Assembly (NCBI RefSeq): GCF_052425735.1
Contig: NC_135763.1
Location: forward strand, 37,448,001-37,512,000
Direction: 5' to 3'
Source: Oculina patagonica
Taxonomy: Eukaryota
Length of the DNA stretch: 64,000 bases
Below, one piece after another: positions 42,252-61,075 of this stretch. The position numbers were made by a program, and so were the translations under genes. The notes under the pieces are model-generated. The model did not search any database and was not told where the DNA came from. It saw only the letters and a program-made list of their open reading frames with translations. The first letter of the stretch is position 1. The number at the start of each line of letters is the position of its first letter.

Positions 42252-45200
42252 TTATCCAACAGGCATCGCGTGCTCCGGGAAAAGAACCGGAGTCGCGACG
42301 ACACCAGCCCCAGTCTCGAACTTCCAAATAACGGATCCATCGTCACCGTGCAAAGCGTACACAAACTTATCAGAGCTAGCGGCGTACACCACATTATCAC
42401 GTGATACTGCTACCGATGCCACGACGTAGTCACGTGTTGTTGGTGACCATATATGGGAGCCGTCGGTTTGTTTGAGCGCCAAGATGCGGCCATCGCCTGA
42501 TCCAACAAAAACCTGCAATGTGAAAATACAAATTAAAGCGATGAGTACTTGAAACAAGAATAAGAGGTACAGGTCTGGTCTGTACTTCAGAAAGAAAACA
42601 ATGGGTGCATACTAAACTTGCAAGTCCAGCTAGTTCACATAAAGAAATAATTTTACCGATAACGAGTTACTTTGAATAGTCAGTCNNNNNNNNNNNNNNN
42701 NNNNNNNNNNNNNNNNNNNNNNNNNNNNNNNNNNNNNNNNNNNNNNNNNNNNNNNNNNNNNNNNNNNNNNNNNNNNNNNNNNNNNNNNNNNNNNNNNNNN
42801 NNNNNNNNNNNNNNNNNNNNNNNNNNNNNNNNNNNNNNNNNNNNNNNNNNNNNNNNNNNNNNNNNNNNNNNNNNNNNNNNNNNNNNNCGAGACAATCCTT
42901 ACTCACCCTCCCATCCTCAGTTATGACAGGTGACGACACCACCTCCCCACCAGTGTTCACCGTCCACTTGACTTTTCCCGCCAAAGGTCCATCTATGGTG
43001 TTCACAGCAATCAGCTGATCCTTGATCAAGCCAACATACAGTGTGCCATCCAACTTACTGACCACTGGGGACGACTCCACTTCAGACCCTGTGTCATGTG
43101 ACCAGTACAGCTTGCCTGATTCACGGTCTAGAGCGTAGATATTATGGTCTAGAGTCGCAAAGAACACGGTTTGACCGCCGGGCATGAGAGCAGGCGAGCC
43201 GTAAACGCTTCCGGCCCTGTCAAATTTCCAAGCAATTTCACCCGAGCTGGCTTTCAGAGCGAATACATGAGGCGTGTCCTGCGAGTCTGATGCGTTCGAT
43301 TTATCCGAGGTACAGCCGGTGAAGAGAAGCCCTTTCTCGTTGTCCACAGCAACAGCACCCCAGATAGGACAATGAAGGTCTGTTTTCCACAGAACGGACC
43401 CAGTTTTGCCATTCAAAGCATACACGTGCTTATCCTGCGACCCAACATAGACTGTCCCATCAAGACCCACTCTTGGGCTCGCCACAACGGCTCCTTCGGT
43501 CTTCAGTGTCCAGACTACGGATCCATTAGCTGCACCAAGGGCATAGACATTGCCATCATTGGAACCAAAATAAACGATCTCTTCGTCTTGGCTAAGAGCT
43601 GCAGATGACATGATCTTGCCAAGAGTTCGGTATTTCCAGATAACAGTCCCGCTGGCCGCGCTAAGTGCGTACATGTTGTGGTCTTCGGAGCCGACGAAAA
43701 CAAGTGGTTCGACTGACGAATCACCGCTGAGGTCTTCGTCATCTAACAAAAAAGAAAAAAGTGTCATTGAATGAATGTTATAGTAATTATCCTTTCAATT
43801 GAAAAGTTTCTTTTCCCTGTAAATGCAGTGACGTTAATCAATAATCAAATAAAGAATGACAGACTTTCATCCGGCGTTTGTCGTTTGTTGAGGTCCAAGT
43901 AATTTTCCTCGTTGGGAAGAGTAAGAAAACTCGAACAGTGTTTGATTTTCATTCACCAATCGCAAAACAGGACAAGCACTCGTAAAGAAAACAAAGGTTT
44001 CCCCGTCAGCTTGACGTCATAAATTTTATGTCATGTTGCGAAGCAACCGGTTGTAAGGAGACCGCGGGCTCAGGTACTTGTTTCCTCGGTAACAAAGGTA
44101 TATTGAACAATTCTGATATACACGTGAAGGTCAACTCACAGCACAATCCACAGCTTTCTTGACAGTTGATCAGCATCCAGTCAGGGTTTGATCTACATTC
44201 ACCAGAGGACGCCCACTGCTGACAGTTTGAATGTTTATCTGAGCAACCTAATTATCATTAACGAGGTCAAGTTAAGAATGGAGCTGGGATGCATTTCAGA
44301 GGCTATTTGAATAGCTAGATTTTTTTGATGACGTTACGCAAATTTAACTGTGCATTTGCTTTAAGGTTTTGAATTTTTTAGCTCTGTAATTTGGATAAAA
44401 AAAACTTATACACGTGCGCTTGTTACTGGTTACATTATTTTCCGCGCTTTTCATTAGTTCCGGTATTTTCCCGCGCTTGTCACAAATTACATGTTTTTCG
44501 CGCTTGCGACTAGTTAAGCCTGGATCTCATATGGTCGCCCGATCGTTTCTATCGCTTCGATCGTTTGCAAATACTGAGACGATCGTAGGCGATCGAAGCG
44601 ATTGGAAGCGATCGGGGGTTCTCATGTGATCGTCCCGATCGCCTTTATGGGCGAAGACCTACGAAAAACAATCATTTCAGCCCTAGATCCAACACAATGG
44701 CGGCCTTCAATGAAAGGACAAAACTCGTGGCCTCCTATCTTCTTAGTTATTGCAACTTACAGCAAAGGAGGGAGAGAGAAGCTAGAAGGATAGAACACGG
44801 GCGATCCAAGCGATCGTAATCGCCCCAATCGCCGCAGACGTTAGCGATCGTCTGTGTAATGATCTCATATACAATCGCCCCGATCGCTAAAAAACGTTTT
44901 GAAGTGACAGAGCCGACAGAAACGATCGGGGCGATTATATGAGAACCAGGCTTAACATGTTTCAGTTCTTGCGCTTGACAATAAATAAATGTTCCCACGT
45001 GCTTCGCCGCCCTCGCCATAAGTTATGTGTTGTCCCGCTCTTGTCACTAGAAACTAGTTACAAGTTTGACTGCGCTTGCCAATGGCTCAGTGTTTCCCCG
45101 CGCTTGTCAAAGGTTAAGTTTTGTTTTCCGCACTTGTCACTAGTTTATACGTGGTAACGCTTTGCACGAAAACACGCGATTCCTTGGTTTATAGTTACCC

Positions 45201-48200
45201 CTTTGGCGGGCCCTTTGGAAACTATATGTCAACTATAAACGTCGAAAAGGCTGTAGCCATAATTACCTAATCCTTTCTCCAGCTTCTGTTCCAAAGGATG
45301 GAATTCATAATCAGTGATGTTATTGAAATACTCGATTTCATCTTCATTAAGAGAAAAGTCCAAGGCTCGGAAATTCAAGTAAATATTTCTTGGATTCTTT
45401 GATCGTGGTATGACCGTCACGTTAACGTGAATGGCCCATCGTAGAACAACTTGTGAAGGAACAAACTCGTAATGGCTGGCAATCTCCAAGATCAGCGACG
45501 AACTTAGAACGGGATTTTTTTGCAAACCGTGGAAGTAAACCCATTGAAGGCCTGCAAAGAAAAGATCGCTACATCAGTTAAGGATTAAATTAACTTGAGT
45601 TGGCCTCACTACGTATAATTTTCGATGGCCTTTGTTGAAACTCAACGTTAGTAACGGACTCTTTTCAAGAACGCCCTTAACCTTGAAATACGTTTTCAGT
45701 GGTTTATCGAAGATCTTTATCAGACTCAAAGTGGAAACTTTATTTTTGTACAATGGTAAGAAGTAGTATTGTAAGTAGTGTATGTCTTGTTTTGTAACTA
45801 GTTATCCTCGTGGTGCAACAAAAAAAAGACGTTTTGCAAAACATTCGGAATAAAGCAGTTTCTTATTTTAATTTTTACCATGATTCTACCCCGTAACATT
45901 TACTTCTTAGGAAGCTAATTTTAGTTTGCCAAATAATGAATTAACGCTTTTTGGTCATAAAATCATAAGATACTAGTAAAAAATTTAAATACCGTATTTA
46001 TTCGATTAAGCGCCCTGGACCTTGAGGGTGGGCGCTTATTTGAGGTGGGCGCTTATTCGAGGCTGGGCGCTTTATTAAATTCTCTCCATTTTTAGCAAGT
46101 AGTACATTTATTTTGCAAGAAAACAATGTATAATAACTAAACCTGAAGAAGCTGAATTTTAACTGTTCATTGAAAGTTTCAGTAAAAAACTAAACAAACT
46201 CGGTCTTTGGGGTCGTCTATTAGTAGTAAGTAGTCAATTTCACTCTCAACTTCAATAATAATGAGTACTCCTCTTGTGCACTTCAGGGGTGGGGGGGGGG
46301 GGGGGGTTGGGCGCTTATTCGAGGTTGGGCGCTTAATCGAATAAATACGGTAATTTTTACGTACATTTGTATATTAAACTTACTGGAGCAGAAGTTTGAA
46401 CAAAGCCCCCCCCCCCCCCCCCCCCGTTCCTTTAAAACTGATACGTTCTTCTACTAAACAAAACATTGAATGTTGTGATGTTTTTAGCTCAAACTGGACG
46501 ACTATTACATAAGTTTACACAACAATAAAACAACTTACCAAGAGTTGAATATCCAATGTATCTAATGTTGTGCTCTTGGCAGAACTTCCTAACTGGACGA
46601 TCTTGATGAAACGGGTCAAACCAGTTTTGAACTGCAGACACTGGCACTGTAGCAAGTTGAACCAGTTCCTCCAGGTCTTGAGTGTCAAAGTTGCTGACGC
46701 CCAGACTGCGTAGCTTCCCTTTCTTTTGCATTTCCTCCATGGCCTTCCAGCTCTCTTGCCAAGTTCCCTTGGGCTCTCCTACAAAAGACAAAAAATTAAG
46801 AGTTTGTTGTTTGCAGGAAAACTTTGGTTTTTGGAAAGACGTTATGAAACAAACGTTTTGCTTAATATTCTAGGCCAGAATATTTAAAGTATGATTAAAC
46901 TAATCCACGATTAGCATGAATTTGGCTCTCAGTTTTTTTTAACTTTTCAGTGAGGTTTTCTGTTAATACAAGATAAATTGAACCTCAATCAACTTTAATC
47001 CTGGGTAAGTGTTAATTGGCTTTCGAATGACCCAGCCCTGGATGGAGAGTGAGGAACTCAAGGGTGTGCTCTAATTCTTAGAATAATTGCAGGGTGCCCG
47101 AAGGCTCTTCTGTAAGGAATCTTGGGTGTCCAGCCCATAAAAGCTTTCATGGCGGGTAGTACCTCACCCCACTAATTACTCCTGGTCTGTCATGCTACCC
47201 AAAGTGGATCTTACACTATAAGGTTTACACCAGTAAATTACAAAAGATAAAACTTGCCTTCTTCACATGTGAGAAGGAAGTCATCGCATTGCTGGGTGTG
47301 TATAAGAAACAAATCAATGTAGTCTGTTTTCAGAGATTGCAGAGACATCTCAATGGCCACCAAAGTTGTATCATATCCTAAATATTTGGGATGCAGTTTG
47401 GTCAGGATGAATATATCTGACCGAGGGATTCCACTCTGTTCAATGGCTTCAGCAACTAAAGGTTCTGAGCCAGGATATCCTTGGGCTGTGTCAATCAACC
47501 TATTGAGAGATTAAAGAATTCCTGTCATTGGATCAGAAACTTGCTCAATGTAGTCACACTTTGCAAACACTTAGCTACTACAGAGGGTCCATTACAAGGG
47601 GTTGTTCAGTCTGCAGACCATTTTTTTTTTCCTAGACTGCAAATTTCTTTTATTTTCTCCTGAAGACCAAGTCCGCCAAATATTTCTTAACTGTAGACTG
47701 CCAGATAATAAAGAAAGTGCATGCAGGGTGACGCCCAAAAAATGCCTTAAACTGCCAGAGTATAATATACCCTTAATATAGTCACCCTGTTATTACAGAC
47801 AGGAGTTTAAGTCCCAGAGAATAAGAATTACTGAAAATAACTTTCGCTACTTCAGACTTTCTCTACAGGCGCCAAATTGTAGTCTGGAAGGTGTCCATTA
47901 TAGTGGGAGTTGACTGTATATACTGACGGCAGTATAAACTACTACTAAATGAACAATGTACGATATGTTTTTATATTACTGGCATGCAGGGTATAGCAGA
48001 TATTAGAAGGTTTAATTTTTTCCTCTTTAAGCAGGAAAATGATATTTTGACTGATGGCTGTACTCACTTAAGGATACTGGAATGGTAAATTCAAGACTGC
48101 TAGATGATGAGACTGATATCTTTTCTGTGAACTAGCCTGGGACCTTCTTTAGCCTTGCAAAAAAAATCAAGACTCTGAGAATGCATCCCAGGCAAGTTTG

Positions 48201-51200
48201 AGATGACAAGACCCCTGAAACTTCGCTGACATTTTGCGAGACGCACATATCTTAAAGGACCATTCACCAACCCTTCACTTACAAGAAAGTTTAACTAACA
48301 ACCACATTCAATATGACTGTAATCACCTGTAGCCGACTTCAAGTGCTGCTTTAACAGCAGTAGTTGTGTTCTCCATCAGAGTAGCTGTACCAAAGCCCAT
48401 AACTGGCACTAAAGAGGGCAAAAAGAGAAAGCACACTAGTGAATGGGTCAATTATCAAGCAAGTACTTATATCAGCCATTTTGTTTACTTACTGGTAAAT
48501 TTGAATTGGACATGTTGCAGTTAATTTTTGATCTTAGTTAATTTTTTATTTCAACCTTTTTTCTAACAAGTTTTTAATATACTAATATTAAGTTGAAAAA
48601 GGAAAACACCTTCCCTCCCTTAATGTCTCATATCCCCCTCCCTACTATCTGCTATTATCCACATCCCCTAAGTACTATCATCTAATTTTCTTTTCTTTTT
48701 ACTAACCTGCACTGGATTTGAACTCTCAACCCCTTATCCACCTTGCCACGTAGGAAACGTTGGGTGAACCACTATTTTTTCAAAAAAAAAAATAGTATGT
48801 GACTCCAACCCATACCCTAACCCTATTATTTAACTATAAAATTATAAAAAATCAACTAGTTAGAAAATAACTAACTAGTAAAGTAAGAAATTAACTGAGA
48901 TAAAAAATTAACTGCAGCAGATACCCTAAACCATGGGGTCAATAACACGCACCTGACTGACTCACTCTGTGCCCAAACAGGTTTTTATCGATTACTATCA
49001 ATGACTTACTTGTGTATCCGCTTGCAAGTTTGACATCCGCTGGTCTCTCATTTCGTTTTGGAATCCTTAGGGGTCCACTGCTAGGATCGCTAGCATTGAT
49101 TTTTAGAATAGCGTTTAAGGCATGCTTCTCCTCTTGGCACTGAATCCTGTCTGGTTCATCTTGGACAAGCTTGTCGAACATCTCTGTTACCTACAAAATT
49201 AATGAAAATAATAAAATATGTTATGTACAATTCAAATCAAAATTTTACTTAACTGTCAAAAATTCTCTCAACTGTGAAAATTGTAAAAGAGCAACAGCTA
49301 TACCATAAAATTCCGGTCATAAGTCCCCCCCCCCCCCTTGCTTATAAGCCTCCCTGGTTATAGGCCCATCTACCTGGAAACAAACAAATACGTCCGGTTT
49401 TGCCCCCTCCCCCAGATATAGGCATCCCTCTGCTGGATGACAGTATTGAACAGGGCTAAATGGTGCTTTATTATGACTTTTTAACTTAAAAACCTTTTTC
49501 GATCAACAATACCATGGCTTTTTTCGAAACGTTTTTTATTCCGCTAATAATCCTCACCCGGATATAAGCCCCTCAGTTTATAAGATCACCCAAAACCCCT
49601 TACAAAATTGTAGAAGCCCAGGGCTTATAACCGGAATTTTACGTTATTGTATTGAGTGTACAAGTTACCTTTGTCACATCTGTGTCTTCAGAAATCCCTG
49701 CCTCAAGAAACTGCTTCTCAAAGTTAAACATTGCAAACCAGACATTGAGAGCAATGTTAGGAGCGTCATGTGATCGGACAATGTGCCACCAATATTGTGG
49801 GATATACAACATGTCACCTGTCAATCAGTTAGGTGGACTATGTTAGTTACCATCTGATGGACTGAATTTACCGTAACTTAACTCTCTAATTAAAAATACT
49901 AAAAAGTAAGCATTTTTAATTGTTCAAATAAATAATATTGCTTTAAGAAGACTGACTCTAAATCATGATTTCAATAGTTGGTCATGTTTTTTAAAGGCAA
50001 AGGTAAATGTATGGTGGAGGGGAACAGTCGGGGTGGGCTGGGGTGTGGCAGGATCCCCTTCGTAGAGCTGAGGGGCAGGAATTCTGTGGGAGGTGGGATT
50101 CCCAAGGAATATAAGGTCAGGTAAGTGGGAAGTTCACACTTCCCTGCCCCCCTCCCCCACAATGTTGTTTAATGGTATAACCACTAAAGCCACTTCCCTT
50201 CACCCACCTAATGATTATAGATCATTTTATATTAATAGTGAATTACGGAAATACGCTAGTATGAGTTAATTTCAAATATTAATAAAAATGTATGTGTTTT
50301 TGTAAGCTTGCTGGATTTACCTGTTATGAAAAGCTACTTAGCAGCTATTTTTGTTTAAACCACTCACCTTTATTCAAGGTTACTTCATAATAAGGCACAT
50401 CTGCTAGTTTTGGATAAGTCTCTAAGTCTAACTTTTCTGGATCAATTGACAACACTCCTGGGGCAATGGTAAACTGATCAGCATACAGTTCTTTACCGTA
50501 CGTGCTATTAATCAAGTAGACAGTCTTTGTTCCTGAGATGACAGTTATAATATTTTCCAATCCATCATGATGAAAGGCAGAATTAGCATCACCGCTATTA
50601 AATAACAGATTAAGGCTATCGATTGAAGAAGATATCTCATGGCAGTTTAAAACTGATGGTAAAATAATATCATTTAGCATAGGACTGTTTGGCGGAAAAG
50701 CAGAGTCCAGGTAAACATCTTCAGATTTATATATTTTCAGAAATTCTCCAAAAGAAAGCGGCTTCCTGACAGGGTGTTCATTCTTAAATTTCTTCCGATA
50801 TTCCACAGTAAAAATGTTAGACCCAAAATTTGACGCTAAATATGATTCATTTTGCCAGAGTTGTACAGCGGGCCAGTGGTTAGCGCCGTTCCTGATAACC
50901 ACAGGTTTCCTTTTGTGAATGTAGTTGTGGTAGAAGTCAGCGCCACTTGGAGCATACTTTAAACTTGCGATTTCACCTTCTGATGGCCTGTGTTCGCCGA
51001 AACGCTTCAGGTGGCCTGAACAGAAAATAGAATGGTCTGTGAGTTGATTACCAAAGTCAAACCATTCTTAGTAATTTAAATTGTTTTTAAAAAATGTATT
51101 GATATGTTAAATTATATAATTAATTACTATATTAATTTAGAGAAGAGGCCACATCAGCTCTAGCTGGTTTTCATGGGGGTCCTCTGTCCAGGTTGAATTG

Positions 51201-52933
51201 GAATTTGGAAATGTTGGTTTTACAGGAGAAAGGAAACTGGAGTACCCTGAGAAGAACCCTTAAAGGAAGGCAAGAATCGACAACAAACTCAACCCCCTTT
51301 AATGGCACCAGACTGGAATCAAACCTGAGCCACATTGGTGGGAGGTGAGCACTCTCGCCACTGCACCATCCCCACTCCCCAAGGCAGAGATGTGGATGGG
51401 TTGAGAGGAAAACTAAAGTATGGTGCAAACTAAACTCCAGTTAATTATTAATTTAAATTCAGTTTCTACCCTACCTTTCCTCTCAACCCATCTACCCCTC
51501 TGCTTTTAAATAAATTGACTGTAAAAACTGAAATAATTAAAAAAAAATTCTAAAATTTCAACCAATGAAAAATTGACACCTCACCCATTCATATTTATGT
51601 CTTGAACATAATAAATTCATAAAGAAATAAAAACTCAGTTTTTGTTGTCTTTTTGTGAGAGGCATGAAGGCAAATTGCATTCTGGATTATTCAGTGTTCT
51701 TGGGTGCAGTACCTCTCTCCTGGGAAGGGGCACCCTGCGAGCAGAGCCTCTTTTTACTTCCCTGCGGTTGAGATTTGAGAAGCAGAAAGAAGCTCTGCTT
51801 AAATCGTGTCATTTCTTTGAAGTCACCGCAGCCCCAAAGTTTGGGCTGGTCAGCCCAGATTAAACTGGTTTTTGTTGCGCAGGCATTATTTTTTTGGAAA
51901 AACTGATGGCCAACACGGAACCCACAGTATGCTCTCGAGAGCACTTGAGCTGACGATTGCTCTCGCCATCTACTACCGTTTGTGTGCGCGTGCAGCTTCT
52001 GGATCATTGAAGATCTGTTCTTTTTTTGCAAACCAAGAAGAAATTTCACGATTAAAATCACACATCTCTACCATAAAGTCACTAATACGACCTCAAGCAG
52101 TGCTTGACGTGTTTTTGTTCAAGGAAAGCAGATGCTTTTTGAAGAAAAGAACTTGTAAAACAAACACTTTGTTCACACTGTCGTGTACGATCCGACACGC
52201 CATTCTGTGCGCACATGCTAAGATTAAGTGGTCCTCGCGCAAGCTCAACAAAGATTTGACACGATTCTTGCAGAGCCCTTTCTTCTCAAGTATATCAGTG
52301 GAAAAGCTGGAAAGGGCTCTGCTTGCAGGGTGGGGAAGGGGGGAGGGTACTTGGAAAGTTTGGGTGGGAACCTGAGGGTGGGGGTGCTTTGCCAACCCAT
52401 CCACGTACCCACAAACCTTTTCTTTTCAGTGCTTCAAAAATATTGAATTTATCAGACTTAATTTCTTGGCTGTACTTATAGAAGCTTAATTCTTAAACAC
52501 CAAAAAAGTGGTGACCTCATTCGCTCAAAAAGGGGGTACTGTTAGCATTTATTTTAGAAGTTTAGCCGGCCCTTTTTGGTGGTGATTTAGAATTTACCAA
52601 AGCTTTAATAATTAAAGCGGAAATATTTCGTGTTAAAAGGCGTGTTAATTTTACGACTTAAAAAAACTTGTCTACAACCTTTGAAAACTTTTTAGCACAT
52701 CTATCGCTCGGTAGAGCGTTGAGCAGTAAGCTCAAATTAATTTGTAAAGCCACTATCAAAATAGCTGATTCATTAAGTTCAGAATACCTTTTTCCACGAT
52801 CCCGACACAGCCATCTTTGTCACAAAAGCCAGGAGATGAACCTTCAGTTAAGTACCACAGTGAAACAAAAGACAACAGAATGAAACAAGCGCCCGCCGGG
52901 AAAATATTTTCCCCTGTGAGCAATCAACAACAT
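42252..52933 (-). CDS. ~1058-aa secretory-pathway fusion protein: signal peptide, JmjC/cupin 2OG-Fe(II) oxygenase, aldo-keto reductase, ShKT, 8-bladed PQQ-type beta-propeller
   Basis: Exons 52933-52788 (needs a 1-nt correction), 51015-50368, 49817-49669, 49190-49010, 48408-48327, 47499-47258, 46778-46539, 45551-45267, 44247-44140, 43742-42907, 42512-42252. All ten junctions are phase-compatible. JmjC: FHHDGLEN, GDMLYIPQYWWHIV. AKR: MPVMGFGT, IDTAQGY, LTKL, DLFLIH, LGVSNF, VIPRS. Confidence 0.8.
42686..42887. other. Assembly gap (N run) in the last intron of the fusion gene
   Basis: About 200 N characters. Confidence 0.99.
44140..44247 (-). other. ShKT domain exon (phase 1-1) of the fusion gene
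   Basis: CSDKHSNCQQWASSGECRSNPDWMLINCQESCGLC has six Cys in ShK spacing. Flanked by a taattag acceptor and gtgagt donor; too short for the ORF track. Confidence 0.9.
44514..44955. mobile_element. Harbinger-like MITE with cgatcg subrepeats, inserted in a degenerate ttcccgcgcttg minisatellite (44410-45155)
   Basis: ttaagcctggatctcatat ... atatgagaaccaggcttaa. Confidence 0.7.
45992..46350. mobile_element. TA-flanked MITE with CCGTATTT TIR
   Basis: TA|ccgtatttattcgattaagcgccc ... gggcgcttaatcgaataaatacgg|TA. Confidence 0.8.
48513..48919. mobile_element. MITE with long TGTTGCAGTTAATT TIR, copy 1
   Basis: Closely similar to 58559-58996 and in the same orientation. Confidence 0.75.
49303..49644. 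mobile_element. TA-flanked MITE with tataagccc subrepeats
   Basis: ccataaaattccggtcataag ... cttataaccggaattttacg. Confidence 0.65.
51150..51375 (-). mobile_element. tRNA-derived SINE with a V-domain-like body
   Basis: Minus strand reads ggtgcagtggcgagagtgctcacctcccaccaatgtgg...tgagtttgttg...gggtactccagtttcc. Confidence 0.6.
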
Positions 52934-53642
52934 GGCCGAGTGCAAGCGTGAAACCAAATGATTTCCCTCAAAGTTTTGAACGACAGTAGCTAAAATAAAG
53001 CGTTCACTATCTTAAAGACGCCTTGAAGTAAAGTAAGTTATAAATAGTCAGCTGATTCTCTGCGGCCATCTGGTCGATTTCCATCTCCGATCAAAGCAAA
53101 TTTCCATAAAAGCTTTCTCCCACTTTCCTTCGTGCGCATAACGGAAGTTGCGTGACAATGTAAAGAGAATCTACTCTTCTATCATCACATCGCTGCAACA
53201 GCTTTTCCTTTCAACTCAAGCTTGAACAAGAATGAATTCCGAATTCTGCAAGGAACATACCGATTTCTCTAATCTTAAATATCGATAAAATTTAATCTCG
53301 CTGGCCCTTGGTATTTTTATTTTGGAATTGTTATAAATGCGTATAACTATTATTTTTTTTAGAATTGGTCACCAGTGGGGGCAGGTCGCTAAAACTTCCT
53401 GGTGGTCAGTTTTTCTGTCATCCTACGCTTGAAAATACATTAAGATGATTTAAGTTCATACTGTTGAAATCGTTCTCTTCCCTAAGAGTTTCTTTGGAAA
53501 CAAATTATGCATGAAGCGATAGCCTTTGTTTGTATTATCATATCAACAACTTCATTGTTGAGTAATCATAGGTTGATTAATTAACATATTCTCCAAACAT
53601 TTATAGCGCGCGCTGTTCGCGAACTTCTCAAACAAAACCAAC
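52934..53642. promoter_or_regulatory. Probable bidirectional promoter between the two secretory 2OG-oxygenase genes
   Basis: Divergent ATGs at 52933 (-) and 53643 (+), with no recognisable repeat between them. Confidence 0.5.
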
Positions 53643-56600
53643 ATGGCGCACGGAAGAGTGATGTGTCTGATAGTGCTTCTTTTCAGTGAGTTTTCTTCGT
53701 GCATCGCTGACAGTGCAGATCCGTCTGTGTGGGATGTTAAGGATAACACAAAGTTCGGTGTAGCTGAACCAAATCTAGAGGTAACTAGATGGTGTTGTGT
53801 GTTTTAGTGTGTTTGTTTTGCTTATTCGCGGGTTCTGATTTACACAAACAGGTAAAATTTTCAAGGACAGACAATACACTCTATGGGAGGGCATATATAT
53901 GAAATTTAGCGTCTTGTGTGCTGATCTTTGATGAACATAAGGCAAATTTTGATTCATGTTATTATATGGTCTTATATGAATTAAATCATTTATGCGGAAA
54001 TGGCATAAGCTTATGTGTAAACTTATCTGTATACAGGGATACAATCCTATAAAAAAACTGTTTAAGCCACAATTTTAAAACCTTATGAACTCGTTAAGAC
54101 TTAATACTGTCTTCATTTACCATTGATGTTTTTGAGCATACGTTCAGGTTAAGAGAAAAATTCTATGCATTTACGATTAAGTCCATTGTCGGGATTTTTT
54201 TTTCTTGAAAATTAAACAGGTTCAAAAAGATGAGCAAAAAATTCGCATTGCAAATAAACTTGTGAATCGTATAAATTATTTTATAAATCTTAAGTTTTAT
54301 CAGTTTGTCATCTCTATTGTTTCCTCAAATACAGCTGCTCAACTATTTTAGAATTATCATAATACTTAACAATCAGGCAAATTAGAAACTGTCAAACTGA
54401 ATTCACAATATATTTGCTCTCAAATTAAAAGTTTTACGAGAATATTATATTTCAGTTTACTTTAAAATGGATATTTACTAAGCTAAACAAAATTTATATT
54501 GTGTGGTTTTAGAACATTATGTTCCTACTCCCCCCCCCCCCACAGAAGGGATTGGAAATTCCTGGGGGTGGGAGGGGTCTCAAAGGCCAAGTTAGGAAAT
54601 GTATGAAGCTTGATTGGAATTATCAGAGGGGTGGGGGGGGGGGGGGTCTTAGAAAAAATCCCTTCCATGTGGCAGGTGTTGATAATTTTGGAACTACACA
54701 TTTTTAGTTTCAAGGTAGAAGCATGTGTATTCATTTGGTGGGATTTTTTTTATTAAAAACTAAGTGTTTAACCTAAAAATCACAATGAAATCGACTTCTT
54801 TTTTTATTATTATTTTTTTAGGATTCTGTGCTTGATGTTGACCTCACTTCACAAATCAGCTTCAGATACCAGACAAATGATGGCCGCAAAATTTTCGTCT
54901 TTGACAAGATTTTCAAACCAAGGCACCTCAGTATGTTCTCAGACTATTTAAATCTGGACTTGGGGTCGTGGCAGTTCAGGCTCTATGAACCATATGATGG
55001 TGGGGTTGAAAAGCCGACAGACAATATCCCATGGATAAATCCTGTAGATTGTGTAGAATTTTCTAGAACCCTAGTTGGAAAATCCATTCAAAAGGCAGTT
55101 ATGGATGCTGCTGGAACTGAAGATATTTACTATCCGTACAAAGTGAGAGGGAAAATTATGCGGCGAGGAGACTTCACACAACTGTTCACTGATGCTAACA
55201 GAACAGACGATGAGTATTCTGCTATGATGTTCTTGAATCCAAAGTGGAGAAAAAATGATTATGGTGAACTTTATTTGTAAGTTCCCTAGATTCTATCATT
55301 TTATAATTTAATAGTCAATTGTGGTGTGTATTGTTTAATTTGTAAGGGCCATTTTTTATGGTACAATTTTGTTAAGATTCGTCACATGCAACAAGCATAC
55401 AATGTATTACATGTCTATGAGATATTTTTTTTTTCATTTAAATCAAACCTACAAATTGTTTGGAAACATTTGCTGGGACAAAGTTGTAACAAAAATTTAT
55501 TAAACCTTTTTGTTAACAATGTTATTATGAAGGTTACGCTTTCGTCACTTGCATGTTATAATATAGTGGAACCCTGTTATTAATTAAGCCCTTGAGTGAT
55601 TTTTGTCCATTCAAAGGACCATTCAGGTGGAGGGGGACAGGAGGGTGCAGGAGCCCGGGAGGGAAGGGAGGGGGGAGGCAGGAGAATAGAGGGCAGGAAG
55701 TGGGATTCTTAAGTTGGCAGTGGAACCAGGAGAAATTGAAAAAAAAATGCAGCATTTTGTTATATTTTGCAAAAGAAATGGAACAAAGAGGAGAGAACCA
55801 CCACAGAAAGGGGCGGGAAGCGAGAGAAAAAAGTGTGAGAGGTTCAGACCCCTTGGAGATTTCTGTCCCCCTTTTAGTGGGCTTATTTTTGGGGGAGATG
55901 GGGGGCGGAAGGGGGAGTGGGGGTGGGAAATATCAGAATTTAATGGTAAATTTCTAAAACTCCTAAATATATTAGTTCTTGCTTTGAGTGGCTTAGAAGT
56001 GGAAGAAATATTTATATTTGGGATTAAGAAGGTGTATTTTTCAAGGGAAAAGGTTGGGTATTGCCAGGATTATGTGGATTACTGTAATTCATGTTTGTTG
56101 TTTATTCACGTTAATTCTTTTCCAGGTATGATGAGGACAATGAAATTGTTGCTGGAGCTGTTCCAAAGTTTGGTCGTGTAGTTGTTTGGCAGAGCTCCGT
56201 CGCGTACCTCCCAAGGCCACCAAGCATCGCTTTCAAGAAGGGGCAGCTGCTACTTCATGTACAATTCACAAAATCAAAGGAAAAAATGCTCCAAGACCAT
56301 GCGGAGATAGTGGCATCTAGAAACGAACGCAAAGCTGCATATGATGCAGGATTTATTGGAAGTGACAGGCCTGCCCCTGCCGACATTGATGTGGCAAAGC
56401 ATTTTGTTTCTGTGCATAAATCTTCACAAGGAAAGAAAATACTTGTGTTTGACGATCTTTTTGACAAGGAAGATTTGGATAAATTGCGTGCCTTCATATT
56501 CAAGCATGGTACATATTATTATGATGACAGTGATGAAGGTGATAACGATAGTGATAATGTTCAATGGATTGCAGGTTTTGAGATCAATGACTACATTCAA

Positions 56601-57672
56601 AGTAGGCTGTGGAACATTATGCAGCAGGTATGCGAGTCATTAATACCAAAACTAACCTTTTATTCTGAAGAGTGTTGAAAAACTGTAACTTGTCTTTAGA
56701 ATGTCAATACATTGTTAAGCTGGCACTGGTGACGAAAGTAAAGACACTGAATCTAACTTGAATTGCATATAGTATTACACAAAATATGATTTGGAGGCAG
56801 TTCGGCTGAGTGGTTAGAGCACTGCTCTTGAAATCCAAAGGTTACAGGTTCTGACCACTAGCTGACAGAGCTGCAAATAACAGTCAGTCATTGGACGTTT
56901 GCCGACGAAAATTTGCTAATGTCTGACAAAATCCCAAGTGTGGTCGGACATGATGTCAGGACAATTTTTTGATTGTAAATGCATGGTTCATCACAGCAAC
57001 GATGATTATTAAAATCTGTCAGACCACAATTTTGTTTTGTCCAACCAGTTTGGTGTCTAAGTAGGACATATGTCTTTCAAGTGACAAAAATTATTTGCAG
57101 CCCTGAGCTGGTATTGTTTCCATAGTCCCAAGTTTAACTCTTGGACTAGGATTGTAAATAGCCAACTAGTCTGCCTCCTGCCATTTTGAATCAAGTACAA
57201 TACCTGTTTTGTTTGTTTATATTGCCCCTGAAATGCCCCATTGGGGGAGTGGTCAATAAAGTTATATTATTAAATTTTTATTAACAGATAGCTCTCTTAC
57301 TGAAAATTGCTTTGCAGACTTTAAAACACATGACTGGGCGGGATAAGTGGTTTCCATATGACATCTCCTGTAACTTGATCAGAAGTGCTGACCACACACG
57401 TATTCACCAGGATTGTGAACCCCATGAGGATGAATGGACTTACCTCATATATCTAACACCAAACTGGACCAAGAATGACTATGGAGAAACTGCTTTCTAT
57501 GAGACAATGACTAACAACAATGAGATCATCACTGAGGTCCGGCCAAAGTATGGTCGAGCTGTAGTATTCCAAGGTAAGATCACATTACCCCACTATCAAT
57601 CAATTAAGACACAGGTTTGGGTGAAATATTGTTTAATGAGACAGGAACCCCAGGGGGGGGGGAGTTAATTTG

Positions 57673-57717
<45 letters not shown>

Positions 57718-60084
57718 AATACCAAAAAAAAAAAAAAAGGGCAAGATGATCGATCAATTATTTTTAATAACATTAATAACAAATTATTGTAGGGCTTGTG
57801 ACATAAGGAAGCCAACTGGCCACAGTTTAGTAGAAAATGCAGTCTGGTTTGAGCCCTGACAATGACCCCAGCCAGGACTCAAACTGGGACCGCTCAATCC
57901 CTATAGATAGGGAGACAAAAATGAGTGCTCTAACCATTAGACCACCCTGTCTCACTACCTAGATCAAGGAAAGCTGTCCATCCATCCAGCAGTCAACCTT
58001 CCCCTCTTTATCCTGAGCATTGTAAGAAGAATATGCATGGCTTGCACTAGGGTAGGAGCCCTATTCAAAGGTCTTTCTGGAAAAGAAAATGATATACAAG
58101 GAGAACAACCTGTAACAATATTGTAATAAAGCTTTTATCCAATGCTTTGACAAAGGCAGTTGAGTGAATGTCCATTAATAGCTCTTCTTTAAATAAATTT
58201 GTTCTTTCTTTTCCTGCCACAGGTATTATTCCTCATTCCGCCCGTCCACCCAGTACAAATCAATCACGTGCACGCCTCACCTTTGTTGCTAAAGTGTCTG
58301 TGAATGAGATGGTTGGTCGAGAAAAGGCGTTCAAAGAGGAAATGAGACACTTTCAGCCTTTAGTAATGTCAGAAAGTATGCCAGATTTGATGCATCGCAG
58401 TCAAGGTATGTGCTGAAAAAAGAGTAATCCTTTACCACCTAAGAATGTTGAAGTACAAGTTTGACATCTTTAAATGCAAAAATTTCCATTTGGGAAAAAA
58501 ATGGAAAGAAACAGTACCACATAAAATAACTGTTCAATAGCTTTCATTTGAATGGTTATGTTGCCAGTTAATTTTTGATCTCAGTTAATTTTTTATTTTA
58601 ACTAGTTAATTTTTTTTCTAACTAGTTTTTTTTTATTCTAGGTTAATAAGTAGAAAAAGTAGAACACCTCCCCTCCCTTGATATCTTATACCCCCCCCAT
58701 CCTTACTAACACTCCCCTACTATCTGCTGTTATCCTCCTCCCCTAAGTGATATCATTTATTTATTTTTATTTTTTACTAACCTGCACTGGATTTGAACTC
58801 TCAACCTCTGGATTTGCTGTCCAACCCCTTATCCACTGTGCCACGTAGGAAACGTTGGGTGAACCACTATTTTTTTCAAATATATGATACCCTAACCCTA
58901 ACCCCATTATTTAACTAGTTAAAAAAAATCAACTAGTTAGAAAAAACTAACTAGTTAAAATGAAAAATTAACTGAGATCAAAAATTAACTGCAACAGTTA
59001 CACACTAAGGTTCATTCACTTTAGATACGAGTTTAACTTGTAACACTTTGCACTTGTTTTAACTCTATCCCTGAAGGAAAAGCTTCATGCGACACAGTCT
59101 AACTCTTAGGTCACACTCTTGATCATCGTAGAGGGTAGCTAAATTGGGAAAAGAAGTTTTTTTCATTTCAAAAGCCTAGGCGTGGTTTCACGTGGTTTGG
59201 TACGCGGAAGCTAGTTCTCAGGACTCCCCTCTCACTAGGAGGTGTGAAGAAAAAATTCTGGGAACGAGTTTACGTACACACTTGCTCTTCAGCTTTTTAG
59301 ACATTTGGGCATATCTTGGTGTTGCGGAACTTATTGTTGGTTACCTTTTGTCAAAAGATGATCGCACTATCCACAACACCAAGAAACTCCAGAAAGTTTT
59401 ATTGCATCCTTTCTTTCAAAGTTCATTGTTGTGAAGTTATCAGCGATGTTGTGGGAATATTTCTCAGACTTTTGACATCAATAAAGAGGGTCCTGAAGGG
59501 GTAAATTGGAGGTTTTTTTTTTTGGAAATGGTTTGGGTAGGGGTAAGAAAAAAAAAGGGGAATAAAGAGAAATAGTATTAACGGAAAAGTGGTGCTGCAG
59601 AACGGAAAACGTTCAATGTAAGAACTTGGCACGATTTTACGGTCTTGCGAGCCTGGATAAGAAAGAGCTGGGTTTTTTTTTATTATTTTCTGTAATTTTC
59701 TTGATTTTCTATTGAAAGCGTTTTAATAACCAATTTTCTTTCCGCATTTATCATTTTCCTTATCAATCCACGTTTAAAATTTCAGACACGGACGAAAAAG
59801 AACCCGAGGCACAAGAAGAACAAACAGCAGACGGTGAGCATGAAGAAAGAGAATCCGAGCCGATGGATGAAGAGGAAGAGAACGAGGAAGAAGAGGATCC
59901 CAGAGAAGGCTTTACTGATGAGGAGGAGCCTGATCATCCTGTATTGAAAGAATTAAATCAAAAGCTAGAAGAAGTCAGGCAGAGTGGAAGCTTGGATCAA
60001 ATGAGAAATCTGCACAGCGAGCTTCATGCACGTCACGTGATGGCGAGACAGGAAGCTGTTAAACAAGTAGCGAATATGATTTAG
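53643..60084 (+). CDS. ~610-aa signal-peptide protein with two tandem prolyl-hydroxylase-like 2OG-Fe(II) oxygenase domains and an acidic C-terminal region
   Basis: Exons 53643-53780, 54822-55276, 56126-56627, 57318-57573, 58223-58405, 59786-60084 join in phase (1833 nt). N-terminus MAHGRVMCLIVLLFSEFSSCIA. Internal repeat: GRKIFVFD/GKKILVFD, DNIPWI/DNVQWI, W.KNDYGE twice, PKFGR/PKYGR. Domain 2 has IHQD, PHSARPP and RLT. Confidence 0.85.
56793..57260 (+). mobile_element. tRNA-derived SINE interrupted by a MITE (56866-57105)
   Basis: Head ggaggcagttcggctgagtggttagagc; the insert has TIR cagagctgcaaataa/ttatttgcagccctg flanked by agctga and agctgg. Confidence 0.6.
58559..58996. mobile_element. 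MITE with TGT...ACA termini and 4-bp TSD (GTTA), copy 2; Ginger2-like termini
   Basis: gtta|tgttgccagttaatttttgatctcag ... ctgagatcaaaaattaactgcaaca|gtta. Confidence 0.75.
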
Positions 60085-61075
60085 ATGTGAACACGAAATA
60101 AATAGCTGTAAGATGAATGAAATTAATTGTAAGAACAGTTGTAGAATGTATTTTAAGATGCAATCAAAGCTCTTTTTACAAAAGCTATACATATTTAACT
60201 TAAAAACAAGTCAAAAACGGACGAAAAAAATTCGGTCAATCCGTAAAACTAACTGATATTATGTAAACTCGACACAGTAAAACGGTTGAAAATATTTGTT
60301 CCGGCTGGTTTACATTGAATAAATGACTGAATCCACTTTTCGTAATGTGATTTGCCATGGCGACGTCCCAATCTTGCAGAACGAGCCAACCAACGCAAAC
60401 TTCCTGTTTTATTAACTAATCAGCACTGCGTGCTTTGGCTACACGTGTTTTCAGTTTTCCCGCGCTTGTTGTTGTAAAAATGTAAATGTTGTTACTTCTT
60501 TCAATTTATCCGAAAGAAGTCTGGGGCGAGACTTGTCTCGCAGTCGCATGTGGGACCTTTACTGGGAACATAATGGATTTTCGTCTTTTGTTATATTCAC
60601 AATAATGTAACGGTCCCACAAGCGACTGCGAGAATGAGACTCGCATCAGATTTCTTCTCAATGGGCCCTTTGCAGCAAACGGCCATTTGGCTGACTCGTC
60701 CCCAGTCGTTTCTTATGCGAAAATTGCAAGACGCGAAGAATGATGGGATTTGCTTCTTCCTTCCCATGATTCCCTCCTAGACTCACGGACTAAAAAAACA
60801 ATTGGGACGAGTCAGGTCCTCCCCACGTCAGGTCACGTGGTACAATTAACACCTTGCTGGAGGGCAAGCACCGCTGTGGGACTTCCATAACAAAGTGTCT
60901 TCATCCCGTCATGCTTGACTTTCCTTTGTTTTGAATGTTTGAATGTCTCAGAGCGTAGCTTTTGCTCCAGCATGGCAGATTTTGTACAATGTGATCGTAA
61001 GCTGCACAATAAAGGACCCATTCCGATGAAATGTACGGCTACATGCAGTTTAAAAGTTGCAACTGATCAACAAGA

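Follow-up and report, generated by a model that had tools for sequence, protein, structure and literature searches.

A tandem prolyl-hydroxylase-like protein of the coral Oculina patagonica with a conserved, probably non-catalytic N-terminal domain and a putatively active C-terminal domain

In a stretch of 64,000 nucleotides from the coral Oculina patagonica (assembly GCF_052425735.1, contig NC_135763.1, forward-strand positions 37,448,001 to 37,512,000; hereafter the window), a plus-strand gene at window positions 53643-60084 encodes a protein with two consecutive oxygenase-like domains. We consider it likely that this protein is a secretory oxygenase resembling the prolyl hydroxylase domain (PHD) enzymes, in which a live C-terminal domain (domain 2) is preceded by a non-catalytic, conserved pseudo-enzyme domain (domain 1). 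The gene comprises six exons separated by introns that are all of the GT..AG type, and its coding sequence of 1833 nt specifies 610 residues, laid out as a putative signal peptide, two homologous double-stranded β-helix (DSBH) domains of the PHD/prolyl 4-hydroxylase (P4H) type, a disordered acidic tract and a helical tail. RefSeq lists the identical protein as XP_078374159.1, 'uncharacterized protein LOC144657678 [Oculina patagonica]'.

In oxygenases dependent on 2-oxoglutarate (2OG), an H-x-D...H motif binds Fe(II) and a later Arg binds 2OG. Domain 2 carries the full site (H395, D397, H455 and R468) together with the YLxPNW motif (here YLNPNW) and a DNVQWI motif. In the alignment of the two repeats these four residues face F168, D170, Y225 and Q238, so that domain 1 lacks both iron-binding His residues as well as the Arg of strand VIII. 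To our knowledge, every 2OG oxygenase uses such a 2-His-1-carboxylate/2OG site, and we know of none that works without both His ligands. With both His and the Arg missing, domain 1 would be unable to form the canonical iron/2OG site, and its sequence marks it as a conserved pseudo-enzyme domain.

That the two repeats align had been noticed in a first-pass annotation of the window, and the similarity proves to be far beyond chance. Residues 47-285 and 286-520 are 28% identical over 183 residues in a BLASTP comparison (E 3e-29), and the family profiles of both halves match over 191 columns in hhalign with a probability of 100 (E 4.8e-46). Since the two domains resemble each other far more than either resembles any solved family, an internal duplication within the PHD/P4H clade would explain the tandem. 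The diverged strings that the annotation had quoted are all in place, QLFTD at residues 166-170 and AYLPRPP at 224-230 of domain 1, opposite RIHQD at 393-397 and PHSARPP at 454-460 of domain 2, and Q238 stands where the Arg of its RLT string is expected, which is R468 within RARLTF. The Glu/Asp-rich tract and the helical tail described there were likewise recovered: in the structural model, the tract at ~514-555 is disordered and residues 563-609 form a helical hairpin with a predicted local distance difference test (pLDDT) score above 90, while the C-terminus reads ...ANMI and thus is not of the KDEL type. A gene-fusion artefact is excluded, because exon 3 alone runs from the end of domain 1 into the beginning of domain 2, and a single RNA contig of 1413 nt covers exons 2, 3 and 4. 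As a separate observation, a conserved RRGD string in domain 1 (residues 160-163, window 55161-55172) falls on a DSBH strand opposite the R-x-x-D of domain 2, which makes a structural role probable and led us to drop an integrin-type RGD reading.

Despite its missing ligands, domain 1 retains the fold on which the idea of a pseudo-enzyme domain depended. Taken as one piece, it is matched by PF13640 with 31.2 bits against a gathering cutoff of 27, and the GenBank model of this gene, KAL9971354.1, reaches 64.5 bits with PF13640 and 47.6 bits with PF13661 (cutoff 27). An AlphaFold2 model of domain 1, computed with 100 family sequences as input, has a mean pLDDT of 92. Foldseek relates this model to PHD2/EGLN1 (E 2.4e-7) and also to PolD, OGFOD1 and Pseudomonas PPHD, and VIA-align gives Z scores of 15.6 to PPHD (4j25), 15.0 to both PHD2 (4kbz) and Dictyostelium PhyA, 14.7 to Trichoplax PHD (TaPHD) and 14.2 to the prolyl 3-hydroxylase (P3H) structure 8k0m. 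Altogether, these results indicate an intact DSBH fold. Searches with single exons were less informative: exon 4 was the sole one with a Pfam match (PF13661 29.6 bits, PF13640 29.8 bits), and its sequence on its own gave a marginal TaPHD match in the PDB and no other. An ESM Atlas feature search returned generic PF13640 clusters alone, mostly phage or bacterial, with no functional lead.

Relatives were collected by an exhaustive HMMER search with exon 3 (122 representatives) and a word-seeded search with the Nematostella ortholog (74 proteins), and all are either nameless or labelled just 'Prolyl 4-hydroxylase alpha subunit Fe(2+) 2OG dioxygenase domain-containing'. The family is widespread among marine invertebrates: named sources belong to Cnidaria (Oculina, Porites, Montipora, Acropora, Nematostella, Actinia and Dendronephthya), Placozoa (Trichoplax), Porifera (Corticium and Sycon), Ctenophora (Mnemiopsis and Bolinopsis) and, among deuterostomes, from echinoderms, hemichordates, amphioxus and tunicates. 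Entries from vertebrates, arthropods, nematodes, molluscs or annelids were not among the relatives in these searches, which is absence of evidence. A literature search turned up no paper on the family, the relevant publications being the OGFOD1 structure paper and the 2010 survey of Iyer et al.; the family is thus present in databases yet unstudied. The Oculina genome itself holds at least four further paralogs, two of them intronless with single open frames of about 500 residues, and a multi-exon one lies about 760 kb downstream of the window gene on the same contig. In the one paralog scored for ligands, the first domain is likewise dead.

Across the 104 members of at least 400 residues, domain 2 shows H-D-H-R almost without exception, and the full ligand set is found in no domain 1. 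The first-pass annotation had asked whether the loss of domain 1 ligands is conserved in orthologs; this holds for the complete H-x-D...H plus Arg set but not for its H-x-D part, which many orthologs still keep. In the ortholog clade, which tracks the species tree in a rough FastTree phylogeny, nearly all members have Tyr in place of the distal His and Gln in place of the Arg. The first His is kept in Nematostella, octocorals, sponges, starfish, hemichordates, Ciona and ctenophores (as H-x-D in Nematostella, octocorals, starfish, hemichordates and Ciona, and as H-x-H in sponges). It was lost independently in stony corals (F/Y), amphioxus (Y), crinoids, sea urchins and Trichoplax, and the replacements seen across lineages are F, Y, V, T, S or M. 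By parsimony, the ancestral domain 1 looks to have been H-D-Y-Q, already unable to bind iron and 2OG canonically, with the relic His eroding since. Judged from these alignments, the ligand loss would predate the split of the sponge, placozoan, cnidarian and deuterostome orthologs, and the coral Phe168 would represent a late, extra loss atop the ancient loss of the distal His and the Arg.

The same distribution bears on the idea that domain 1 was re-purposed, with Tyr225 and Gln238, joined in many orthologs by His and Asp, forming a non-canonical metal or cofactor site for a catalysis or sensing of its own. Such a site would fit the cross-phylum conservation of Y225, Q238 and the S-x-x-Y-L-x-R-P-P-S...G-Q block around them, as well as the H-x-D or H-x-H retained in the lineages just named. 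However, the first His is Phe in the coral and was swapped independently in several lineages, which is the pattern of a relaxed relic, and an active oxygenase lacking both His ligands would have no precedent that we know of. We therefore regard a re-purposed site as improbable.

Of the two domains, domain 1 has the faster evolution: its mean column conservation is 0.50, that of domain 2 is 0.66, and its identity to deuterostomes is about 37-38%, compared with about 60% for domain 2. Such values would fit a functionless remnant, kept since its removal destabilises the protein. Against this, domain 1 is 60% identical between Oculina and Nematostella, and all orthologs and paralogs from sponges to tunicates possess it as a full-length, confidently folding unit, in which about two dozen positions reach at least 85% conservation across 36 orthologs, including R160, R161, D163, W188, K190, N191, Y193, G194, P211, R215, Y225, R228, P229, P230, S231, G237 and Q238. 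Moreover, synonymous changes exceed replacements among close relatives: between the window and related coral transcripts, we counted six synonymous changes and four conservative replacements in domain 1, and 12 and three in domain 2, in a small, partial sample of 37 listed exonic differences out of 136 found. Domain 1 thus appears clearly constrained, though less conserved than domain 2, and we consider a mere remnant very improbable.

The closest architectural parallel is the OGFOD1/Tpa1/Ofd1 line of ribosomal uS12 prolyl hydroxylases (4NHX, 3KT4), which, like the coral protein, combines an active and a metal-free DSBH in tandem with an acidic disordered region. Tpa1, OGFOD1 and Ofd1 are also the best whole-chain structural matches of the coral model (E about 1e-11), colinear over both domains, although with TM scores of 0.22-0.30 and an rmsd of about 17 Å it is the topology that is common, whereas the rigid-body packing is not superposable. 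Catalysis by OGFOD1 takes place in its N-terminal domain, with which the C-terminal domain, devoid of a metal site, shares 12% identity, and Nro1 and Ett1 are bound by the C-terminal domains of Ofd1 and Tpa1 (PMC4396695). The coral protein shows the opposite order, with the dead domain first and the live one second, and it possesses a putative signal peptide, whereas OGFOD1, Tpa1 and Ofd1 are nucleo-cytoplasmic; this contrast, drawn already in the first-pass annotation, is correct by structure comparison and by the published description (PMC4396695). Furthermore, the coral repeats are 28% identical to each other, compared with 12% in OGFOD1, and PF10637 (Ofd1_CTDD) has no match in the coral protein at E values up to 10. 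As neither half has a closer relative than the other half, the tandem points to a separate internal duplication rather than to membership in the OGFOD1 family. The comparison of sequences and models thus suggests convergence on one live and one dead DSBH.

As single domains, PHD2/EGLN1, TaPHD, PPHD and DdPhyA are the nearest folds of domain 1 (Z 14.7-15.6), and TaPHD is the nearest solved sequence of domain 2 in a PDB profile search (E 9e-5 over 67 positions). With domain 2, these kin of the hypoxia-inducible factor (HIF) PHDs share the H-x-D...H...R site, YLNPNW and a D-x-[IV]-x-W-I loop motif. They are, however, single-domain proteins of the cytosol or nucleus without a signal peptide, and the coral protein has no MYND domain; as the sequence similarity is marginal, we do not consider the latter an EGLN ortholog. 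The loop motif lies in a segment of domain 2, Y-[YF]-DDS-x-D-x-x-SDNVQWIAG (residues 326-347), that is Asp/Ser-rich and invariant and whose counterpart in domain 1 is variable. HMMER aligns its DNVQWI with the R-G-D-K-I-A-W-I segment of TaPHD, and we presume that the loop matches the substrate-closing β2-β3 loop of PHD2. Its composition suggests Ca2+ binding or the recognition of a basic substrate.

A further likeness is to the collagen P4H (C-P4H) α subunit, P3H/leprecan and P4H-TM, 2OG oxygenases of the secretory pathway that recognise their substrates through a non-catalytic N-terminal module, and P3H1-3 are among the structural matches of the coral model. Their modules are tetratricopeptide repeats, peptide-substrate-binding domains or EF-hands, whereas that of the coral protein would be a degenerate DSBH, and none of the Pfam N-terminal domains of C-P4H α or P3H was found in the coral protein. 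P3Hs carry a KDEL signal, and C-P4H uses a Lys for 2OG. PolD (9blq), a small-molecule hydroxylase, is also among the nearest structures.

The N-terminus bears on the probable location of the enzyme. Exon 1 encodes a hydrophobic, signal-peptide-like segment with small residues at -3/-1 and a predicted cleavage after C-I-A, before D. Such an N-terminal hydrophobic segment is seen in 61 of 69 aligned members, a KDEL-like end in none of them and a later transmembrane-like stretch in one; no later transmembrane-like segment was seen in the Oculina protein. The natural reading of these sequence features is a soluble enzyme that is either secreted or resides in the lumen of the endoplasmic reticulum (ER). 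The predicted mature N-terminus (residues 22-46, window 53706-53780) holds a short, Pro-rich motif that is conserved across phyla and predicted to be disordered. It reads DPxxWPFxDPNxFGxA in amphioxus, hemichordates, starfish and a sponge-like sequence and is degenerate in corals; possible roles are those of a docking peptide, a propeptide or a pseudo-substrate.

The gene lies head-to-head with a gene encoding JmjC (Cupin_8), aldo-keto reductase (AKR), ShK and propeller domains. The GHLKRFG string of its JmjC exon fits the GHxxxhG motif of the 'secreted JMJD5-like family' of Iyer et al., a family described as confined to animals, with losses in vertebrates, arthropods and nematodes, and as predicted hydroxylases of proteins on the cell surface (PMC2938197). 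In Nematostella, the ortholog is likewise paired head-to-head with such a gene (Cupin_8, Aldo_ket_red, ShK and PQQ propeller), across a spacer of about 1.07 kb, and the JmjC exons of the two species are 55% identical (E 4e-83). In Trichoplax sp. H2, a Cupin_8 gene stands between two tandem-hydroxylase genes, its first exon being 31% identical to the coral JmjC exon (E 1e-19), and in the sponge Corticium a Cupin_8 gene with weak, partial similarity to the Trichoplax gene is found one gene away. The linkage is not universal, since no JmjC neighbour lies within 10 kb in amphioxus, Ptychodera, Patiria, Sycon or Bolinopsis, and the other Oculina JmjC paralogs are not adjacent to the other tandem-hydroxylase paralogs. 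Nor is the pairing simply part of one large frozen block: mTOR lies downstream of the Nematostella ortholog, and the 4 kb downstream in the window contain no match to mTOR or to any of the Nematostella locus. The searches yielded neither a tandem-hydroxylase nor a secreted JMJD5-like gene from vertebrates, arthropods or nematodes. The recurrence of the linkage in three non-bilaterian phyla and the similar phyletic pattern are suggestive, though not proof, of a functional coupling. A run of 202 N (42686-42887) lies within the neighbouring gene.

Two further readings build on this linkage. First, the two genes may form an ancient linked two-oxygenase module of the animal secretory pathway that acts on a shared extracellular substrate, with the pseudo-oxygenase domain serving for docking or hand-over between the enzymes; in cnidarians, the JmjC enzyme of this pair is fused to the aldo-keto reductase, the ShK knot and the propeller. 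We put this forward as a tentative idea that is doubtful at present. Second, domain 2 might hydroxylate a metabolite in a small-molecule pathway with the product of the linked JmjC/AKR/propeller gene, domain 1 then being a ligand-binding or carrier module. The head-to-head arrangement with the Cupin_8-AKR-ShK-PQQ-propeller gene in Oculina and Nematostella, the homologous linked Cupin_8 genes in Trichoplax and Corticium, and the presence of PolD, a hydroxylase of a nucleoside-antibiotic pathway, among the top structural and sequence neighbours are all compatible with such a pathway. The nearest characterised kin, however, are overwhelmingly protein prolyl hydroxylases (PHD2, TaPHD, PPHD, DdPhyA, OGFOD1 and P3H), the PHD-type DNVQWI and YLNPNW motifs are conserved, no JmjC neighbour lies within 10 kb in five genomes, and cell-surface proteins are the predicted substrates of the secreted JMJD5-like family (PMC2938197). 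A metabolite pathway is in our view unlikely.

The gene model on which these comparisons depend was derived from the listing of open reading frames and a three-frame translation, with frames joined at GT..AG sites. RNA evidence came from contigs of four public runs from four studies, covering 54100-60099; their library type is unrecorded, and the contigs are spliced. Four of the five junctions, those connecting exons 2 to 6, are present in these contigs (55276/56126, 56627/57318, 57573/58223 and 58405/59786, all GT..AG), which shows that the gene is transcribed. The older GenBank model KAL9971354.1 (588 residues) differs solely by a 66-nt pseudo-intron at 56508-56573, which is retained in the RNA contigs. 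The 22 residues that it misses (GTYYYDDSDEGDNDSDNVQWIA) contain the loop with the highest conservation in the family, in which D341 and W345 are invariant, and XP_078374159.1 rather than KAL9971354.1 is the correct model. Two runs contain a contig in which 58396 is connected to 59800 through 23 other letters, a variant start of the acidic tail beside the main form 58405/59786, which is either allelic or derived from a related species. Stretches of introns 1, 3 and 5 (54500-54700, 56900-57100 and 58500-58700) show a very high summed contig depth with many loose ends in all four runs; these represent dispersed repeats, probably fragments of transposable elements. Coordinates of all features are collected in Table 1.

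Table 1. Features of the tandem-hydroxylase gene, its neighbour and its paralogs (window coordinates, except for the paralogs, which are given by genome contig)
Feature	Position	Strand	Description
Exon 1	53643..53780	+	Start codon, putative signal peptide (residues 1-21), flexible N-terminal peptide (22-46); GT donor after 53780
Exon 2	54822..55276	+	N-terminal two thirds of domain 1 (putative pseudo-oxygenase DSBH) with degenerate H-x-D site
F168	55185-55187	+	Exon 2
D170	55191-55193	+	Exon 2
Exon 3	56126..56627	+	End of domain 1, linker helix 247-287, start of domain 2
Y225	56205-56207	+	Exon 3; in place of the distal His
Q238	56244-56246	+	Exon 3; in place of the 2OG-binding Arg
Acidic loop	56508-56573	+	Exon 3; invariant, residues 326-347, YYYDDSDEGDNDSDNVQWIAG
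Exon 4	57318..57573	+	Core of the putative catalytic domain 2
H395	57405-57407	+	Exon 4
D397	57411-57413	+	Exon 4
Exon 5	58223..58405	+	Distal His, strand VIII, helix after domain 2
H455	58234-58236	+	Exon 5; distal His
R468	58273-58275	+	Exon 5; strand VIII
Exon 6	59786..60084	+	Acidic disordered tract (~514-555), C-terminal helical hairpin (563-609), stop codon; no KDEL
JmjC-AKR-ShK-propeller gene	42252-52933	-	Head-to-head with the tandem-hydroxylase gene
JmjC/Cupin_8 exon	50348..51067	-	Carries GHLKRFG
Spacer	52934..53642		~0.7 kb between the divergent genes; candidate bidirectional promoter
Paralog locus	C1:36570226-36571119
Paralog locus	C1:37292405-37293628
Paralog locus	C1415:13149-13973
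Paralog locus	C6:38266903-38269930

Based on these data, we propose that the gene encodes a soluble secretory-pathway 2OG/Fe(II) oxygenase in which the C-terminal copy (~288-476) would be the working hydroxylase, with H395-x-D397...H455 holding Fe(II) and R468 the C5 carboxylate of 2OG. The target of this domain would most likely be a protein, with proline as the probable site. The N-terminal copy (~47-246) would serve as a scaffold and as a substrate- or partner-recognition module for the catalytic domain, a role reasoned by analogy with the C-terminal domain of OGFOD1/Tpa1/Ofd1, but one that would have evolved independently and in the opposite order. Gene structure, transcription, the homology of the two domains, the fold and the conserved ligand loss are established by the data above. 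For the coral protein, we infer the activity of domain 2, the secretory location, the protein or proline substrate and the binding role of domain 1 from homology, motifs and models.

Several points weigh against this proposal. Substrate, location and activity are likewise what we infer across the whole family, and with PolD among the nearest structures, a non-protein substrate is possible. In orthologs in which His and Asp stand beside the conserved Tyr, domain 1 may still bind some metal. Finally, the full-length model (pLDDT 84.4, predicted TM score (pTM) 0.81) contains two DSBH domains with a long helix after each, and it is the pTM by itself that suggests a packing of domain 1 on domain 2; when the two domains were submitted as separate chains, the complex prediction scored 0.26 against a mark of 0.34, an outcome that speaks neither for nor against such a packing.

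In summary, our analysis points to a second origin of the pairing of active and inactive DSBH domains, which among 2OG prolyl hydroxylases has so far been known only from the intracellular OGFOD1/Tpa1 line (PMC4396695). In the family described here, the pairing would have arisen by a duplication of its own, with opposite polarity and in the secretory pathway. Having persisted for over half a billion years in sponges, placozoans, ctenophores, cnidarians and invertebrate deuterostomes, the family may serve as a natural system for studying the function of a pseudo-oxygenase domain. Moreover, it points to an as yet unstudied hydroxylation activity, either extracellular or in the ER, of early-branching animals, reef corals included, for which the recurrent linkage to a secreted JmjC oxygenase provides a testable lead to substrate and pathway.

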